64,000 bases of DNA from assembly GCA_001179505.1 (NCBI GenBank), contig CDMY01001045.1, forward strand, positions 124,001 through 188,000, given 5' to 3'. Both the position numbers and the translations under genes were made by a program. The notes below the pieces were generated by a model. The model did not search any database, was not told where the DNA came from, and saw only the letters and a program-made list of their open reading frames with translations. Origin of the DNA: Vitrella brassicaformis CCMP3155. Taxonomy: Eukaryota; Protista; Chromerida. Below, piece after piece: positions 17,576 through 25,629 of this stretch; position 1 is the stretch's first letter, and every line of letters starts with the position of its first letter.

Positions 17576-18874
17576 GAAGGAGCCGGGCTGCCAGCGTTGT
17601 GCTGATCATGAGTGGAGAGCTGTCTCGGAGAAGTCAGACACACAGAGCCGAGCAGAGTGAAGTGTGACATGCAAGGCGACCCGGCGCAATTGTTGGATTG
17701 GAATGAACATAGGGCTCGATCGGCTCCAGAAGCGTAGGCCATGGCCATGTGCAGGAATCCATAGATGGGCACATAGGAGAGAAGAAGCTGGGGATGTGGG
17801 GCATCTATGGGGCTTTACTTAAGTGAGACATGCTGAGTTTTTTTGAAAAGACTGCTCGTTGTCTCACTGTCTCTGTTCCGGGAGGTTTTTCGTTGGCTGC
17901 AGCGCGTAGGGCCATGCTCTTGTCCTCGTCATGTACCCTCTGCGAGATGACATTCACGCCAGCACATCATGCACGCCATCGCACGCACACCACAAGCAGA
18001 CAGACGGTCGCTCGACATTCACATATATGTATTTGACGACTGCGGCGTGCTGTCCTGCATGGCGTGAGTAGCACACGGGCTGCGGGCGAGAGGACAGCCG
18101 TCGACTGAGCACTTCGGAAAAAAAGAATCAATGGGTCAGAGGATTCTGAATCAATGGCGCACGGCAGGGAAATGGAGAGAAGAGCTTGACGGCTGCTGCT
18201 GAGAGATCTTTGTAGCACAGCGTCCAAATGTGCATTGCGATGGCTTGTTTTGGCGCTGCTGAGCTGGAGAGGGCGGCTGGGGCGGACTGGAAGAGGGCGA
18301 CGCAACATCCATTCATCGACGGCATCGGGGACGGCACGCTGCTGTTTTGGGAAAAGTTCAAGCAGCAGCGCCAAAACAAGCCAAGTGCACGTTTGGACGC
18401 TGTGCTACAAAGATCTGTCAGCAGCAGCCGTCAAGCTCTTCTCTGCACCATTGTCTGCTTCTCCATCCACTTAGGCTCGCAGCGAGGGGGTCCTGGGGGT
18501 TTCCCGTCTCGTGACGGAGACTTGCAGATAAATCGAGATTGCGTACGTGGTGTAAGAACCATGTTCGTCGGCAACGAGGCGCCCAGCCGGGCCAACAAGC
18601 GTTCAAAGAGGACAAACAAAGCCGCCAAAGGGGACGTGGCGTCTGGCCGGTTCTCTTGCGTGGCTGCGCTGGGCATGATACTGTGGATCTGCCTGTTCAT
18701 CTGCTGTGTGCTGGGTGAGCTCTCACTGAAGCAAACTGAATGAGCTCTCACTACGTGCAGCTCTTCATTGAATTGGTACGGCTGCCTGATTGTGAGTGCA
18801 TGCAGCTCTTGTGCTGAACAACTACGAGGAGGGCGAGGAGCTGGGGCTGAACATGAAGGGCGAAGAGACCTCAT
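17572..18874 (-). pseudogene. Possible degraded gene interrupted by a fold-back element
   Basis: Exon-like pieces (PLAALFVLFERLLARLGASL; RVHDEDKSMALRAAANEK; LLLSYVPIYGFLHMAMAY) that I could not join into a clean frame. Confidence 0.25.
18176..18444. repeat. Fold-back inverted repeat (~85 bp arms, ~100 bp loop) enclosing a TenA-like coding fragment
   Basis: 18176-18234 is the reverse complement of 18386-18444 (2 mismatches in 59). 18241-18261 is a perfect reverse complement of 18363-18383. The loop reads ELERAAGADWKRATQHPFIDGIGDGTLLFWEKFKQ on +. Confidence 0.85.
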
Positions 18875-18927
18875 ACATACAAGGCCCGGCCCGTGAAAAG
18901 TTCAAATATAGGCGTACGTGTCGCACT

Positions 18928-21900
18928 ATGAGGAGTGAGTCCTCATGTTAGGGTGTCGACGAATCATTTTTGTTGCGTTCGTGTGCAGTGCCCCAGAATG
19001 CTTTGCTTTTCAGCCTTGCCGCCGGCTGTTTCGCCGTCTTCACTGCAGCATATTTCGTTTCATTCATTCTCATACAGGGCAGAGGCCCGCCGCCGACCAT
19101 CACCCAGTCCCAGTATATTTATCGAGGCCTTAAGACCCATGCCTGGTCCTCCCTCCCGCCGCAGATAGCGGTGGGGTGCGTCTTGGCGGTGTTGGTGGGA
19201 TTCTCGTCGGAAGAAATAAAAAAGGGGACGGGGTTCGCATCTGGCGGTGCCTTTTGTGCCGGGGCTCTTCTCCTGCTTTTGAGCCAATTGTTGGGTCTCT
19301 GGACCGTTGCCAATGCCAATCTACGTGTCGCGAACGCTCTGGCGGGAGACAAGGGCCTGTCGGTCGGATTGCGCATTGCAACACGAGCCGGTGGGGTCTG
19401 TGGGCTTGTCTCACAAGCGTTTGCTCTGATGGGATGCGCTGTGCTGTACCTTTTCATTACGGATCTGGTGGTCCTCGTCGCGTGAGGAAGAGAAAGGAAG
19501 GAAATACAGCTGATTTCACCGCCATTCTACATTTCGATCGTATCCCCTGTTTGTGTTCAGCTTCGCGGCTGGAGGGTCTTACCTTGCATTCCTCATACGT
19601 GAGCAGAAGACTTATTGAGAGACACAAACCCGATCGCTTTTTCCTTCGCCTTTATGCAGGCGTTGGCGGAACAATCTTCTCGAGCGGCGCCAGGATTGGC
19701 GACGATCTTATTGGTGCCTCTGATGAGGTCAGCGCCCAACCAATGGTGGATTGTGATGTATCCACTGGCTGTTTCTCCTGGTTATGTTGTGTCTCCCTCC
19801 CTCCCTCCCTTGCTTGCTGGCCTTCAGTCTCGCAAGATGGAGGAGGACCGTATCTTTCAGCAGGTATGCACCCGATGACCCTCACGTATTTTGTCGTGTC
19901 ACCATTGCCCTGTCTCCATGTATGCCACAGCAAGTCATGCTCAAAAAGGCAGAAGAGGTCGGCCGCATCCCAGCCACTGACGCCCAAAATGTGTCTTTCG
20001 GTCGATACATTTCTCGCACTGTTATTCCTCCTTCAGGCTCGCCGCGAACGGCCCAAGCAGGGAGACGTGGAGGCACCAGTAAGTTTCGGGAAGTCGACTG
20101 CACGGCTTCTTTTTTGTCCTTTTTGCTTTGCTCAGGCTGACGACGACGACGACGACGAGGTTCAGGCAGGGTTTGACGGCAAACATCACCCCATAGAAAT
20201 GCTCCCATCGGTCGGCGGGAGCATTTCAGAGGCCTCGGGATCAGCTACGGATGCCTTTGAGAGCCTAAGCCTAGCGCTGGCCATCACTGCAATGGTCGGT
20301 GTCAAACACTTGGTCAATGATCCGGAAATGGGGGCAGCTCTTCCTTTCTGGGTAAGTTACCCGGAGAATAAAGAAGATGTGGCGCGCGCAATTTCGTGCC
20401 ATTCTACAGAGTCCGTTTTCGATCATCAGATTGCTGGCGGAGGTGTTGCGTCTTCTGCCCTTCTTTCCTTCGGTCTCATCGTGTTTGAATCTTCATCGGC
20501 TCGCATGCTTCGGCTGGCTCTTCGAGCGTCAAATATGCTGTGTGGAGCAGCGGTCGTCGGGGTGCCCCTCGCCGTGCTCCTTATCAAGCAGCATACTGAC
20601 AAAACAGTAAAAACAGGAAGTGGAAGAGCAGACAAACAAGAGACATGCCCCTGTCCTCTCTGCTGATGTTGCATGTAGAACATCGGCTTCACCCAAATTC
20701 TTCAGTTCGCTTTCTGCATTGGAGCTGGCGTGTTGGCGCCCGAGCTTAACTCCGTCATTTGTGAGGTCCTCACAGATATCCAGTCAGTGCCGTCGCGCAT
20801 AGCATCCATCGCTGAGCATGGAGGCCCAGTGCAAGTGCTGCTCTCCGGGACATCTTGTGGCTTCCTGGGGACAATTCTGCCGTCTTTGGTCGCCATGCTT
20901 GCTGTGACTGGTGAGACCTGACGACCAAACATACATAGGTCACAGCAAGCGGGTGCGTGCTTGCTTGCGTTATTCGCCATCCAGGTGCGTTTCACCTTGA
21001 AGGTTTCTATGGTGAGCGCCTGCATTCACGAGAGAATACGGGGGCTGTATCTGTTTGTTGTGCCCTCAGGCGTTGCCCTTCTGACAGTGGCCTCGCTGGG
21101 GGCCAGCCCCTTCTACGTGCGTACCAGCACACAACGCTGACTGACTCGACAGGCGACACATGCAAATGCTTCCATCGCATGTGTCAGGCCTCAATGGCGG
21201 CGTTTAGCGCCGTGTCCTCCAATGCGTATTTCTTGGTGCCCACAGTGGCGAGCACAGCAGGGGTGGGGGGCGGGAGGTCGTCAGGCAGGGCGAGACGGAG
21301 AGCCATCAAGATGATCGAACTCAGTGCTGCGACATCGCAGTCCGGTGAGTGCGCTGTTCCAGGGAGGACAGGCCTGCTGCTGGTTGGTGGCTGAGCAAGC
21401 CCGTCTTTCTCTGTTTTCTATAGGCAAGGTGGCCAGCGTCACTTCTGTTCTCTTCTTGGCTTTTTGTGTGAGCATCATCGTGCTGGCGGAGGCCCTTACA
21501 CGTGACAACCAGCAGCTGGCAACCTTTGTGGGAAGGCCGATTAGCGAGTTCAGCTTCATTGGTCTTTTTTCCGGGGTGTTTCTGCCTTTTGGGTTTGTGG
21601 GTGTGACGATGGCTGCTGTGTCGGGCATCGGGCATGAGTACGTGACGCATTGCAAGACGCAGCTGAAGGAGGACTCGCCCGACCGGATCGTGGCTCTTGT
21701 GCAGCGGCTGGTAGCGTTTGGTCAACATCGATCCTATGAGAAGGTAAGCCATTGCCGATGGAATCCGCGACAAGATTCCCATTCCTTAATCCAGGTTGCT
21801 CTCCCTCTGGTGGTGTCAATCGGAGCGCCACTCATGGCCGGGATGTTTCTCGGTGCACCTGGGCTCAGCATCTTTCTACAAGTGAGAAAGAGAGAAATAG

Positions 21901-23008
21901 TTGACAATTTCTCTCAAACGTCCTCCTCCTTCTCTCCGTCCTCCGACAGACGTGTGCCATCACAGCGTTTTGCCTGTCGACCTTTCTGACTGTCACGGCT
22001 TCCCTGTTTGAGTCTGCGAGAAACGTGAGCTATCCATACGCGACACACACAGGGAGGGAGGCAGAGAGTCAGGGAGAAGAAAGAAGCATCAGTGACAGAC
22101 ATCTGTGCGTTGTGTATGTGTGTATGTGTGTGTGTGTGTGTGTATGTATTAATGCAGTACATACTGTACGGCAATCTGGTCAAGGACGCGGATGCGTCAG
22201 GGAGAGTGGCCAGGGTGCAGCCCGGCGACCCGCCCTACAATGCACTCACTCTCGCAAGAGTGAGACTTACTTAGCAAGAGCTGCCAGAACATTGAGAGAG
22301 CACGGCATGGCGAGTCTGTGTACTGTGTGCGACAGTCGATTGGTGCTCCGATGGGTGACGCAAGTGGTCCGGCGCTGGCGCAACACGTCAAGCTGATACT
22401 CGGTAACCGCCTTACCAATCGGGCACGAAGGCGACACACGTTCTGCATCCACCCTGTGCTTCTCCTTCCCGTGGGCTGCAGTGTTTGGTGTGCTGTCTCT
22501 GGGACTGTTCAAGATAGACCCCGGGAAGACTTGGGAGTATGGGTTTGTGGCGGCAGCCGGGGTCGTGTTGTGTGCTTCGCTCATTGCAATCGTCTCGAGG
22601 TGGCTGGCACTAAAGAGAACACCCATCAAGTATGCTTCAATGCGCAGAAAACAACAACAACAACAACAACAAAAACATTTCTGGCCCATCCTTGTCTCTC
22701 TGTGTGTCTGTCAGCACCATGCTATCGAAGACAGAGTTGGATTACCATGACAGCCGCATAGAAGCCACCAAGACCGGTAAGAAAAAACATCAAGAGAGAC
22801 TTCTTTGCCATCGGCTGGCCCACGTGTGCGTGTGTGTGTGTGTCCCCGCTGGCTGGCCGCAGAAGCGATGTTGACGGAGCAGGGCGACGCCTCGCCGATG
22901 TCACTTGCTCGCGAGGGCGGCGCCTCGCCCCTGTACCGAGAAGCGACCCAGGCGACGGATGCAGCTGCTCGGTCGTTCCAACTTCACAAGAGCTCAGAAG
23001 AGATGTAA
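18928..23008 (+). CDS. Divergent membrane-integral H+/Na+-pyrophosphatase homologue, probably catalytically dead
   Basis: Helices align in order with V-PPase: LGLWTVANANLRVANA...GLRIATRAGGVCG, VGGTIFSSGARIGDDLIG, ICEVLT...SGTSCGFLGTILP, IGKVASVTS, GVFLPFGFVGVTMAAVSG, GAPLMAGMFLG, YGNLVKDA. The acidic catalytic motifs are substituted. Confidence 0.8.
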
Positions 23009-23132
23009 CACGGCCATGCAAATGTCTCTTGCTCGGCCTGATTGAAGTGTTGTAAGGCGCGACTCTCTGTGTGTGTCTCTGTGTGGTCCTGGGGACAGAA
23101 ATGCCAATCATTATGGTGTGTGATTGATTGCA

Positions 23133-25629
23133 TGTCAGTCTGTGTTTGTCTGTTTGTCCACACAAACAGATAAGCAAATGAGCTAGCTTTTCCATCCCTC
23201 TCTGTCTGTCCGCCCTGCACGCTGATCAGTCAGCTCTTCATTCGGTTGACATCTCATCAGACACCGCCCGACTGCATCATGTCGGACAGATCCACTCCAC
23301 ACGACACACGGCCGTCCACTCGTGAGTCACCACACACGATCCACGCCCTTCGCCTGTCTCACCGCATGGCCGTCGTCCGTCGGCCTGTTGATGACTTGCG
23401 GGACGTCATAAAACGACCTGCACGCACCAAGGACAATTTAGGCACTCACTCTGTGTGCGTCAGTCACATCGGCCGACATCATGACGACACTGACCGGCGC
23501 TGCTTCTTGTAGTTGTTGCGCCGCTCGTTCGTGCGCATTGTCGGGGGCCTGCTGTGTGTCTCGGCTTCGCTCTGCAGCAAGCACAATGACAGAAAGAAAG
23601 ACAGACAGACAGACAGACAAAGAGGTCAGATGCTGCCAAAGCAGCCAGCCTCTTCTCTCTCACTTTGTTTTCATTTGTCATTTTGGCGGTCTTGTGGTCG
23701 TGTCTGAGCATGACGTCATGCTCCTGAGCCACACACACAGAGAGCATCGCCTGTCTGTGTGTCTGTGTCTGCCTCTTTGTTTGTTTGGTGACTTGCTGTG
23801 CGGCGGCCAGACGTTTTTGCAGCGATTGCCACGTCGCCTCGTACTCGTGCTGCTCCTGCACACACATAGATGGACAGCACAAGCAGCGAGGATGGATGGA
23901 TGGATGGATGTGTGGGTCATGAAGTCAGACCTGTTGTGTCTTGTGGAGGTCGCAGGTCAGTTGAGAACTGTGGACATAGACCTGACAGCGAGAGAGACAC
24001 CGAATAAATGAATGAATGAATGAATGAGGCACACACAGAGACACACACACGCACTTGTCGCGTCTCCCGTCTGATCGATGCGATCCTCTCCTCAGCCTCA
24101 GCACACGCTGACACTCACACACACACACACGCACACACACCGATCGGTGAATGGGGAACTGAAGACGCAGAACAGCAGAGCAGTCGACCGACCAATGGAT
24201 GGATGTCTCGCCTGACCTTTCTTCATGTCTTCGACGTCCTTCCTGGCCGCTTCCTTTGCCCTCTCCAGCTGACCGCACTTGTCCACCGCGTCGACGTACT
24301 CGGCCCTGGCGTGCAGCTCGGCCACCGACAGATATCGGGCCGGCAGCGCCTTCAGCAAAAAGGACAGCTCAGCAAGCTGACGGGCCGTGTCGGCTGCCGT
24401 CATTGGCGAGATGTCATCGAGTGGGGCTGGCTGGTCATGCGGAGAGACACTCATTTGTGTGTGTGTGTGTGTGTGTGTAGTGGGCGGGCGACAGGCAGAG
24501 CGAGAGAGTTGTGTCTCGGCAGCACATCGATCGCATACATGTGTCTGTGTATTTATTGTACACCCGGCGAAAGAGGGAGGAAAGAGACTATGTATGCAGC
24601 AGAGCCGTACAGGCCAGTCATGGGTGTATTCATGGTTTGCAGAGTGAAATGTGCACGTGAGCAATATGCAGAAGGCAAAGCAGCAACGCGACAAGGTCAT
24701 TCCCAGCAAGGCGAATAATGCGAACAATCCCCAGCGCACACCACACGTGCAGTGCCTCCCACACACACTCGAAGCAAAAGAACGCAACAGGACGTCGAAA
24801 AGGTCGACAAAACACATGCAAGGCACGTATGCATGAAGGCGTGCAGCACAGCAAGGCCTACGAGTAAAGAGTGAGTGTGCAGCGACACTAGCTACATGAT
24901 GCCAGGCAGTGGCTGGGTGGGATGGGCTGCACGGCGTCGAAGATCTTGATCTCGTCCGCCCAGTGGAGGGCTGTGTGGGGGACAATTGTTTACTGGATGC
25001 ATCCTGAAGCCTTTAGTACAAGAGGTCTCTCTCACTCATTCATTCACACAGACACGTTGCGATAGCACCACTGTCCGTCTGTCCGTCCATGGATGATACT
25101 CATGTGTCTGTCTCGCTGTCTCGCGTGTCTGTGTTACTGTATGTGGTTGTGTGTGTCCCACCGCCGGCTGTGTAGATCTAGATGCCCTTCTCCAAATCCG
25201 TCAAACTGCACACACACGACACGACCCAACCAACCCGTCTCACAACTCGGCGTGTGTGTGGTTGAGTTGCTGTTTGGTGTGGGTGAGCTGCGCCGCGAGT
25301 GTGGACTCGACCTCACGCACACGCATCAGCTCGTCAGACAACTCACTCACCTACACGCACACAAACACATACAGCGAGAGAGAGAGAGGTGTCAATGGCT
25401 GTGTGTGCTGTCTGTGTGTCTGTTTGTGACCTTCTTGTTGTGTTGCTGCTGGAGTGGTTTGATTTGTGCGTGATGTTGTTTGTTGAGGCTGGCCATCTGT
25501 CGGTCCCTCTGGGTGCGCGGATCGTGGAGGGCCGCGGATGCATTCTCGATGAAGCTCTTCTCGTGCGCCTCCACGGCATCCGCCCGACAAGCCAACGAAC
25601 ACAACACACCCAACTCTGACATCCACACA

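Follow-up and report, generated by a model that had tools for sequence, protein, structure and literature searches.

Can the scaffold of an ion pump remain under selection after most residues of its catalytic center have been replaced? The question is raised by a forward-strand gene of the chromerid alga Vitrella brassicaformis CCMP3155, located in a 64,000-nucleotide stretch of contig CDMY01001045.1 (assembly GCA_001179505.1, positions 124,001 to 188,000; hereafter the window, in whose coordinates all positions are given). The gene encodes a relative of the membrane pyrophosphatases (mPPases), ion pumps with an almost invariant active site that are investigated as drug targets in protist parasites and as models for the coupling of chemistry to pumping. 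An earlier note, made from the DNA letters alone, had described the locus as an mPPase scaffold with an eroded catalytic center and proposed a selected, noncatalytic derivative. The analysis presented here shows an intact, expressed gene for an mPPase-descended membrane protein, one representative of a clade comprising dinoflagellates and Vitrella, and makes it reasonably probable that the gene is functional, that the protein has lost hydrolysis of pyrophosphate (PPi), and that its function depends on the retained ion gate.

Comparison of public sequencing runs with the interval 18300-23400 recovered spliced contigs from two runs (X1 and X6), whereas the DNA runs X2 and X4 contained the unspliced form only. 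One spliced contig of 3344 nucleotides (nt) spans the whole mRNA, from 18495 to beyond 23400. The gene consists of 22 exons separated by 21 introns of 51-133 nt, all with GT..AG borders; 15 of these joints were listed directly, and the other six were inferred from contig pieces and from exon lengths that fit the contig coordinates. Joining of the exons, checked by script, yields a frame that is open for 964 codons up to the stop codon at 23006-23008, in line with the earlier observation that the translated exons were open. This frame is letter-identical to residues 90-1053, that is, the C-terminal part, of CEM39679.1 (UniProt A0A0G4H7N3; P0001), a 1053-residue protein of V. brassicaformis CCMP3155 that was found by the exon search and carries the automatic name 'H(+)-exporting diphosphatase'. 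The locus is an intact, spliced, and transcribed gene. A plain pseudogene is ruled out by the presence of a spliced transcript and of 22 exons without a frameshift or premature stop.

The affiliation with mPPases is supported at the levels of sequence and predicted structure. The full-length CEM39679.1 matches the Pfam family H_PPase (PF03030) with 161.6 bits (E 4.3e-47), exceeding the gathering threshold of 29.7 bits, and open reading frames (ORFs) corresponding to single exons match the same profile, at 18970-19482 (exon 3; 42.2 bits, E 5.7e-11) and 21324-21986 (E 2.7e-5). The exon-3 ORF aligns to residues 68-156, covering helices 2-4, of the Na+-pyrophosphatase of Thermotoga maritima (TmPPase). 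Chance similarity to mPPases was considered and rejected, the profile E-values being far beyond chance. A sequence search of the Protein Data Bank (PDB) with the exon-15 ORF returned only pertussis toxin S3 (E 0.5), which was discarded as noise. The AlphaFold2 model, built from an 85-sequence alignment, has a mean predicted local distance difference test score (pLDDT) of 82.9 and a predicted template modeling score of 0.83, with the core exceeding a pLDDT of 90; it predicts 16 core helices in order, arranged in two concentric rings, along with one extra helix at each end. The only significant Foldseek matches of this model are membrane pyrophosphatases, namely, TmPPase, VrPPase of the plant Vigna radiata, and PaPPase (E 1e-26 to 1e-20), with template modeling (TM) scores of 0.80-0.87, depending on the target, at 18-19% sequence identity. 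Thus, the mPPase scaffold and the ordered transmembrane helices recognized from the letters are both borne out. The NCBIfam equivalog models for sodium-translocating and V-type H+ pyrophosphatases draw a sharp line, however: the best score of the Vitrella protein, 149.9 bits, compares with cut-offs of 546-1321 bits, whereas a canonical control (P0100) reaches 1077 bits, and every member of the eroded clade described below misses the cut-offs by at least 300 bits. Feature searches of the ESM Atlas returned generic H_PPase clusters only.

The residues themselves were read from a 111-sequence alignment of CEM39679.1, 54 dinoflagellate-type homologs, three members of a second dinoflagellate group, and 53 canonical prokaryotic mPPases, in which the columns considered were those at least 90% conserved in the canonical, hence prokaryotic, reference set. 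Residue names follow the Ballesteros-Weinstein scheme of PMC6882861 (Table 3), with VrPPase numbering transferred through a HMMER alignment; the helix-12 Asn corresponds to 12.43 by arithmetic from that table, in which it is printed as N12.53. The same paper lists the residues of the hydrolytic center (D5.61, D5.65, E5.76, D5.77, D6.35, D6.39, D6.43, D11.57, D15.61, D16.31, D16.35, D16.39, K5.58, K15.64, K16.38, and the helix-12 Asn), the coupling funnel (R5.50, K5.58, D6.39, D6.50, D11.50, K12.50, K16.38, and D16.39), and the ion gate (S5.43, D6.50, E6.53 or E6.57, S6.54, D/N16.46, and K16.50), and reports 98-99.9% identity at D5.77, D6.50, D11.50, and K12.50 across mPPases; the roles of the residues in the three sets are given in PMC5150537.

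In the Vitrella protein, only two of the 16 positions of the hydrolytic center are identical, D5.65 (D391) and D16.39 (D921), another four carry conservative replacements (D5.77E; D6.43E, E465; D15.61E, E875; K15.64R, R878), and ten are lost. The helix-5 motif in exon 5 (19660-19727), in which D391 is kept, has S384 in place of K5.58 and R387 in place of D5.61, with A395 additionally replacing K5.69, and E5.76 has become Met. In helix 6, encoded by exon 9 (20190-20351), D6.35 is replaced by P457 and D6.39 by G461, next to the conservative E465. Exon 14 (21188-21344), which spans helix 11 and runs into helix 12, carries A670 at the position of D11.50, S677 at D11.57, and A713 at the helix-12 Asn of the PPi site. 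In helix 16, encoded by exons 18 and 19, D16.31 has become R913, D16.35 has become A917, and K16.38 has become G920. The coupling funnel is half preserved: R5.50 (R376), D6.50 (D472), K12.50 (K720), and D16.39 are kept, and K5.58, D6.39, D11.50, and K16.38 are replaced by Ser, Gly, Ala, and Gly, respectively. By contrast with the center, the ion gate is retained in five of its six positions (S5.43, S369; D6.50, D472; E6.53, E475; S6.54, S476; K16.50, K932), the change at 16.46 to Ala (A928) being the only one. The gate Glu lies at 6.53, as in Na+-pumping enzymes, whereas plant H+ pumps have it at 6.57. The protein also keeps glycines and prolines of the fold.

The description of the catalytic center as eroded thus stands for most of the hydrolytic residues and is too broad for D5.65, D16.39, R5.50, K12.50, and the gate residues D6.50, E6.53, S6.54, and K16.50. 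Two of the six motif pairings on which that description was based are out of register. The pairing of GDPLKD with GNLVKD is a misalignment: GNLVKD (22173-22190) forms the loop that follows helix 15, and GDPLKD in fact corresponds to G-A-P-M-G-D at 22342-22359; the helix-11 pairing of DAYGPISDNAGG with NAYFLVPTVAST is off by eight residues, the counterpart beginning at A670 (21197). Both Asp of the helix-11 motif are lost in either register, and the overall conclusion of loss is likewise unaffected. Single substitutions at several of these positions are known from published mutagenesis to inactivate canonical mPPases. Because ten of the 16 center residues are replaced nonconservatively and all NCBIfam equivalog cut-offs are missed, the Vitrella protein most likely cannot hydrolyze PPi, as judged from its sequence.

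Close relatives of the gene were not readily apparent. An exhaustive HMMER search with exon 3 recovered no close ortholog, the next match after the protein itself having an E-value of 8e-6, and a word search with CEM39679.1 returned only the protein itself and distant canonical pumps. However, a weak match, the 900-residue protein P0009, displayed the same odd features and, when used as a query, led to a large family of ~900-residue proteins with a mutual identity of 60-75%. This first group (group A) includes proteins from Durusdinium trenchii, Effrenium voratum, Polarella glacialis, Breviolum, Togula jolla, and Gymnodinium smaydae, along with many from marine metatranscriptomes, the taxonomic assignment of the clade resting on the named members. 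A second group (group B; P0086-P0088 and P0150-P0163; loci L007-L009), from Effrenium and Durusdinium, consists of proteins of ~970-1000 residues that are ~40% identical to the first; since it is also dinoflagellate, dinoflagellates possess two paralogs of the eroded clade. A search for the dinoflagellate spliced leader on nine transcript contigs, which are probably truncated at the 5' end, yielded no match. Several dinoflagellate gene models (P0081, P0089, P0093, and P0154-P0155; 1046-1531 residues) place further domains, such as kinase or aminotransferase, in one protein with the eroded pump; these are probably merged neighboring genes rather than true fusions.

The phmmer scores of CEM39679.1 decrease from 300-360 bits against the first group through 250-270 bits against the second to 40-110 bits against canonical pumps. 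In a maximum-likelihood tree, a branch of 2.29 substitutions per site (Shimodaira-Hasegawa-like approximate likelihood ratio test support of 100) divides 31 clade members from 27 canonical sequences, and Vitrella branches off as the sister lineage of the two dinoflagellate groups (support of 97), matching the species-tree expectation, albeit in a quick LG+G4 search in which long-branch effects are possible given the Vitrella tip of 1.96. The grouping is independently backed by rare features held in common, namely, an insert, extra helices, and derived residues at columns invariant among canonical pumps. The insert between helices 5 and 6 measures 53 residues in Vitrella and 57 in dinoflagellates compared to nine in canonical pumps, and the C-terminal tail that follows K16.50 and contains the extra helix measures 121 and 86 residues, respectively, compared to a median of 14. 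The extra N-terminal helix and its motif are common to Vitrella and the dinoflagellate homologs as well. The existence of this dinoflagellate-plus-chromerid clade is not mentioned in the earlier note.

Throughout the clade, D11.50 is replaced by Ala, D16.35 by Gly or Ala, K16.38 by Glu or Gly, and K15.64 by Arg, and neither D11.57 nor K5.69 nor the helix-12 Asn is present in any member; being common to the clade, these losses predate the split between chromerids and dinoflagellates. In dinoflagellate members, the charge at 16.38 is reversed by Glu. The dinoflagellate consensus is less altered than the Vitrella protein, with seven of the 16 center residues identical and four conservatively replaced, and retains K5.58, D5.61 or Glu, D5.65, D6.35, E6.39, D6.43, and D16.39. 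Losses at K5.58, D5.61, D6.35, and D6.39 come in addition to the clade-wide set in Vitrella. The two dinoflagellate groups share the losses at 11.50, 11.57, 16.35, and 16.38 and differ at K12.50 and D15.61, both of which are lost in group A and kept in the second group. Certain replacements are fixed: all 54 sequences of group A have Ala at 11.50 and Gly at 16.35, with the latter also found in group B and replaced by Ala in Vitrella. The entire ion gate is kept in all 54.

The pattern of substitution points to selection on these proteins. Pairwise Nei-Gojobori comparison of six dinoflagellate-type transcript contigs gave ratios of nonsynonymous to synonymous divergence (dN/dS) of 0.05-0.075 in the three closest dinoflagellate pairs and of at most 0.24 over all pairs, with dN far below dS, although dS is saturated (1.2-3.7) and the ratios are accordingly rough; about 0.05-0.15 can be taken as the general level for the dinoflagellate genes. 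Judging from these ratios, the dinoflagellate members are under strong purifying selection. The least variable helices in dinoflagellates are helices 11, 5, and 6 of the inner ring; helices 12 and 16, also of the inner ring, come next, at a level comparable to that of helices 1 and 4 of the outer ring. The central cavity, funnel, and gate are still heavily constrained. Agreement between the Vitrella protein and the clade consensus falls from 67% at invariant sites through 48% at sites at least 90% conserved and 23% at moderately conserved sites to 16% at variable sites, a gradient that marks site-specific constraint. An open frame, correct splicing, the far from neutral dN/dS in dinoflagellates, and the preferential retention of constrained sites together support the proposal of a selected, noncatalytic mPPase derivative, with neither an internal stop nor a frameshift in the 22 exons and with expression in evidence. 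The gene thus belongs to an old clade derived from mPPases and maintained by selection, in which the hydrolytic center has been either rebuilt or dismantled.

How could such a protein function? The earlier note listed a heterodimer partner, a channel or sensor, and a scaffold as candidates. In the scenario that we favor, D11.50, D11.57, D16.35, K16.38, K5.69, and the helix-12 Asn, without which no working mPPase can hold Mg2-PPi and couple hydrolysis to pumping, were already missing from the ancestor of the clade, which had also gained a helix at each end together with a charged insert of ~50 residues in the lid loop that connects helix 5 to helix 6. Erosion is most advanced in the Vitrella copy, with K5.58, D5.61, D6.35, and D6.39 lost as well. 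Selection still preserves the fold with its two rings and, in the middle of the membrane, the cation gate formed by S5.43, D6.50, E6.53, S6.54, and K16.50. A cation, Na+ or H+, might still be bound or conducted through the old funnel and gate under the control of something other than PPi hydrolysis, possibly the new lid insert. The outcome would be a pump turned into a channel, carrier, or sensor. A fully specified version of this scenario can be offered only tentatively: already in the ancestor that dinoflagellates share with chromerids, a primary pump would have become a PPi-independent cation channel, carrier, or sensor, with its center dismantled, the funnel and the Na+-type gate kept, and the lid insert in control, and the resulting protein would have been strongly selected across dinoflagellates, with Vitrella retaining the most stripped-down form.

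Other explanations were weighed against the same data. One holds that the core is inert and that the protein dimerizes with a canonical mPPase subunit, tuning or localizing the active partner as a regulatory pseudosubunit. Such a role would fit the obligate dimerization of mPPases, with its negative cooperativity or cross-talk between subunits (PMC6882861; the dimer-interface residues given there are semiconserved only), and the fold, including interface helices 10, 13, and 15, is predicted at high confidence. However, conservation in dinoflagellates is strongest in the inner-ring helices and the buried gate, not in interface helices 10 and 13, a mere partner would have no need for an invariant gate, and the extra helices at both ends could alter packing. 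A pseudosubunit is thus unlikely, and the invariance of the gate along with the conservation of the inner-ring helices favors a function through the central pathway over the role of a passive partner. Alternatively, the protein, and in particular its dinoflagellate homologs, might still be an enzyme or a primary pump, with a rebuilt site that accommodates PPi in a different binding mode or binds another phospho-ligand or metal. The comparatively well-preserved dinoflagellate center, including K5.58, D6.35, D6.43, and D16.39, the invariance of the replacement residues, suggestive of a defined new site, and the concentration of conservation in the inner-ring helices would all be expected under this explanation. 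Like the pseudosubunit, it is a serious rival but nevertheless improbable, given that Vitrella has only two identical residues, that most of its Mg ligands are gone, as are, without even a conservative substitute, two of the three lysines that contact PPi, that K16.38 is charge-reversed in dinoflagellates, that no member of the clade comes within 300 bits of an equivalog cut-off, and that single changes at several such positions abolish canonical activity.

It is also conceivable that the clade is functional in dinoflagellates and the Vitrella copy is a transcribed, decaying relic drifting toward a pseudogene. The terminal branch of the gene, at 1.96, exceeds all others in the tree; the gene has also lost K5.58, D6.35, and N16.46, which dinoflagellates keep, shows low identity in helices 11, 12, and 15, and is a singleton for which 5.8 billion clusters yielded no close relative. 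A relic would hardly be expected, however, to maintain an uninterrupted frame over at least 942 codons and 22 exons with all 21 introns correctly removed, to concentrate its conservation at constrained sites (67% against 16%), and to retain the glycines and prolines of the fold and a core predicted by AlphaFold2 with pLDDT above 90. We consider decay very unlikely.

Several observations nonetheless weigh against the favored scenario of a noncatalytic, gate-dependent membrane protein. Apart from the saturation of dS, the dN/dS estimates cover dinoflagellate pairs only, the Vitrella lineage being without a close relative, and the Vitrella branch is long, at 1.96 substitutions per site. The Vitrella protein is least similar to its dinoflagellate homologs in helices 11, 12, and 15, named as those that dinoflagellates conserve most, and has also lost N16.46; because of these changes, it may have lost even the derived function of the clade. 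Retention of the gate residues could reflect a structural need for ion pairs and not the passage of ions. Furthermore, D5.65, the water-activating pair in the conservative form of E6.43 and D16.39, R15.64, and K12.50 are all still present, and with these retained residues, the protein may have residual or altered chemistry.

Comparison with structurally characterized mPPases defines how far the Vitrella protein has diverged. The closest known system is the K+-dependent, Na+-pumping TmPPase (PDB 4AV3, 5LZQ, and 8B21), which has the same concentric 16-helix fold, is the best Foldseek match (E 1.6e-26, TM score 0.83-0.87), and shares the gate layout, with Glu 6.53 beside D6.50, S6.54, and K16.50. 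It differs from the Vitrella protein, at 18-19% identity, in the ten nonconservatively replaced center residues, the ~50-residue lid insert in loop 5-6, the extra helix at each end, and the replacement of D16.46 by Ala. The vacuolar H+-pyrophosphatase VrPPase (PDB 4A01) belongs to the same family and has the same fold, but its gate Glu is at 6.57, where the Vitrella protein has Leu and, instead, Glu at 6.53; the PPi and Mg ligands K250, D253, D283, D507, N534, D691, D727, and K730 of VrPPase are all changed in Vitrella, and K694 is replaced by Arg. The dinoflagellate homologs (P0009, P0019-P0093, and P0086-P0088), automatically named 'H(+)-exporting diphosphatase', are in the same clade and have the extra helices, the lid insert, the retained gate, and the ancestral losses at 11.50, 11.57, 16.35, 16.38, 5.69, and the helix-12 Asn in common with Vitrella. 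They are, however, only ~30% identical to the Vitrella protein and retain K5.58, D5.61 or Glu, D6.35, E6.39, D6.43, and N16.46, whereas group A lacks K12.50 and D15.61, at which Vitrella has Lys and Glu.

The exons map onto the predicted helices as follows. The coding region most likely extends over 18561-23008, as delineated by the spliced RNA contigs, the open frame, and the identity to residues 90-1053 of CEM39679.1. The annotated start codon is the Met at 18228, but the Met at 18561 is the more likely start because the intervening segment (18228-18560, annotated residues 1-111) has pLDDT below 50 and no counterpart in the dinoflagellate homologs; the low-confidence N terminus of the model (pLDDT <50) reaches residue 129, and the annotated 5' part lies partly upstream of the RNA contig end at 18495. 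The start given in the earlier note, 18928, falls inside intron 2, and its exon set missed exon 4 and the small exons 6-8 and 12-13. Exon 1 (18495-18714 in the RNA contig) contains the probable start codon along with the initial portion of TM0, the extra N-terminal helix (18657-18822; residues 144-168 in the model), which is divided by intron 1 and also present in the dinoflagellate homologs. Exon 2 (18806-18913, with GT..AG borders; contig piece 18805-18913 of X1) encodes the TM0-TM1 loop, and exon 3 (18989-19481; Pfam H_PPase, E 5.7e-11) encodes core helices 1-4 and is joined through 19481>19561 to exon 4 (19561-19598), a 38-nt micro-exon that encodes S5.43 and contributes the first base to the codon of R5.50 and is followed by the joint 19598>19660; both joints are seen in X1 and X6. 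The charged loop 5-6 insert (19828-20189) is encoded by exons 6-8 (19828-19863, 19931-19957, and 20037-20078), whose lengths fit the RNA contig with joints 19957>20037 and 20078>20136, and by the start of exon 9.

Exons 10-13 (20430-20606, 20679-20910, 20985-21011, and 21070-21116), supported by RNA contig pieces and joints, encode helices 7-10. Helices 12-15, with K720, E875, and R878, are encoded by exons 15-17 (21424-21743, 21795-21881, and 21950-22024; Pfam E 2.7e-5 for the exon-15 ORF), and the loop after helix 15 together with helix 16 by exons 18-19 (22158-22259 and 22336-22402; joints 22259>22336 and 22401>22481). Exons 20-22 (22482-22629, 22715-22776, and 22863 onward), drawn from the RNA contig and the model, encode TM17, the extra helix predicted at the C-terminal end (22532-22715), and contain the tail and the stop codon. 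The gene contains six micro-exons of 27-47 nt (19561-19598, 19828-19863, 19931-19957, 20037-20078, 20985-21011, and 21070-21116), and micro-exons 6-8 code for most of the clade-specific charged insert. Intron 17 harbors a (GT)n microsatellite (22108-22157), and intron 20 contains a (CAA)n run (22641-22682) that a plain ORF reading would mistake for a poly-Gln tail. In the DNA contigs of X2 and X4, a GT..AC 'joint' omits the 2664 bases between 20159 and 22824; its flanks are only 20 nt long and fall in (GAC)n and (GT)n repeats, and it has the appearance of an assembly artifact caused by these repeats. Elsewhere in the window, a forward-strand ORF at 31803-32927 matches the Pfam ADP-ribosylglycohydrolase family (E 1.9e-23), and six other long ORFs had no Pfam match.

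Pseudoenzymes, such as pseudokinases, typify folds that are conserved under purifying selection after the loss of catalytic residues. Among the primary ion pumps that make up the mPPase family, we know of no earlier pseudoenzyme. Full-text literature searches found no report of a pseudoenzyme or inactive membrane pyrophosphatase, nor of such proteins in dinoflagellates, chromerids, or alveolates, and the chromerid genome paper does not mention pyrophosphatases, consistent with the statement in the earlier note that no class of this kind had been described. The sequences of the clade are already public, under automatic names only. If the favored reading is correct, these proteins would constitute the first pseudoenzyme branch of the mPPase family, in which half or more of the catalytic center was discarded while the gate remained under strong selection, and the clade would represent a natural experiment that separates the ion gate from the catalytic site. 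Proteins of this clade are abundant in marine metatranscriptomes. Automatic names such as 'H(+)-exporting diphosphatase' are probably incorrect for dozens of them in dinoflagellates and chromerids, with consequences for the metabolic modeling of coral symbionts and of algae that form blooms.

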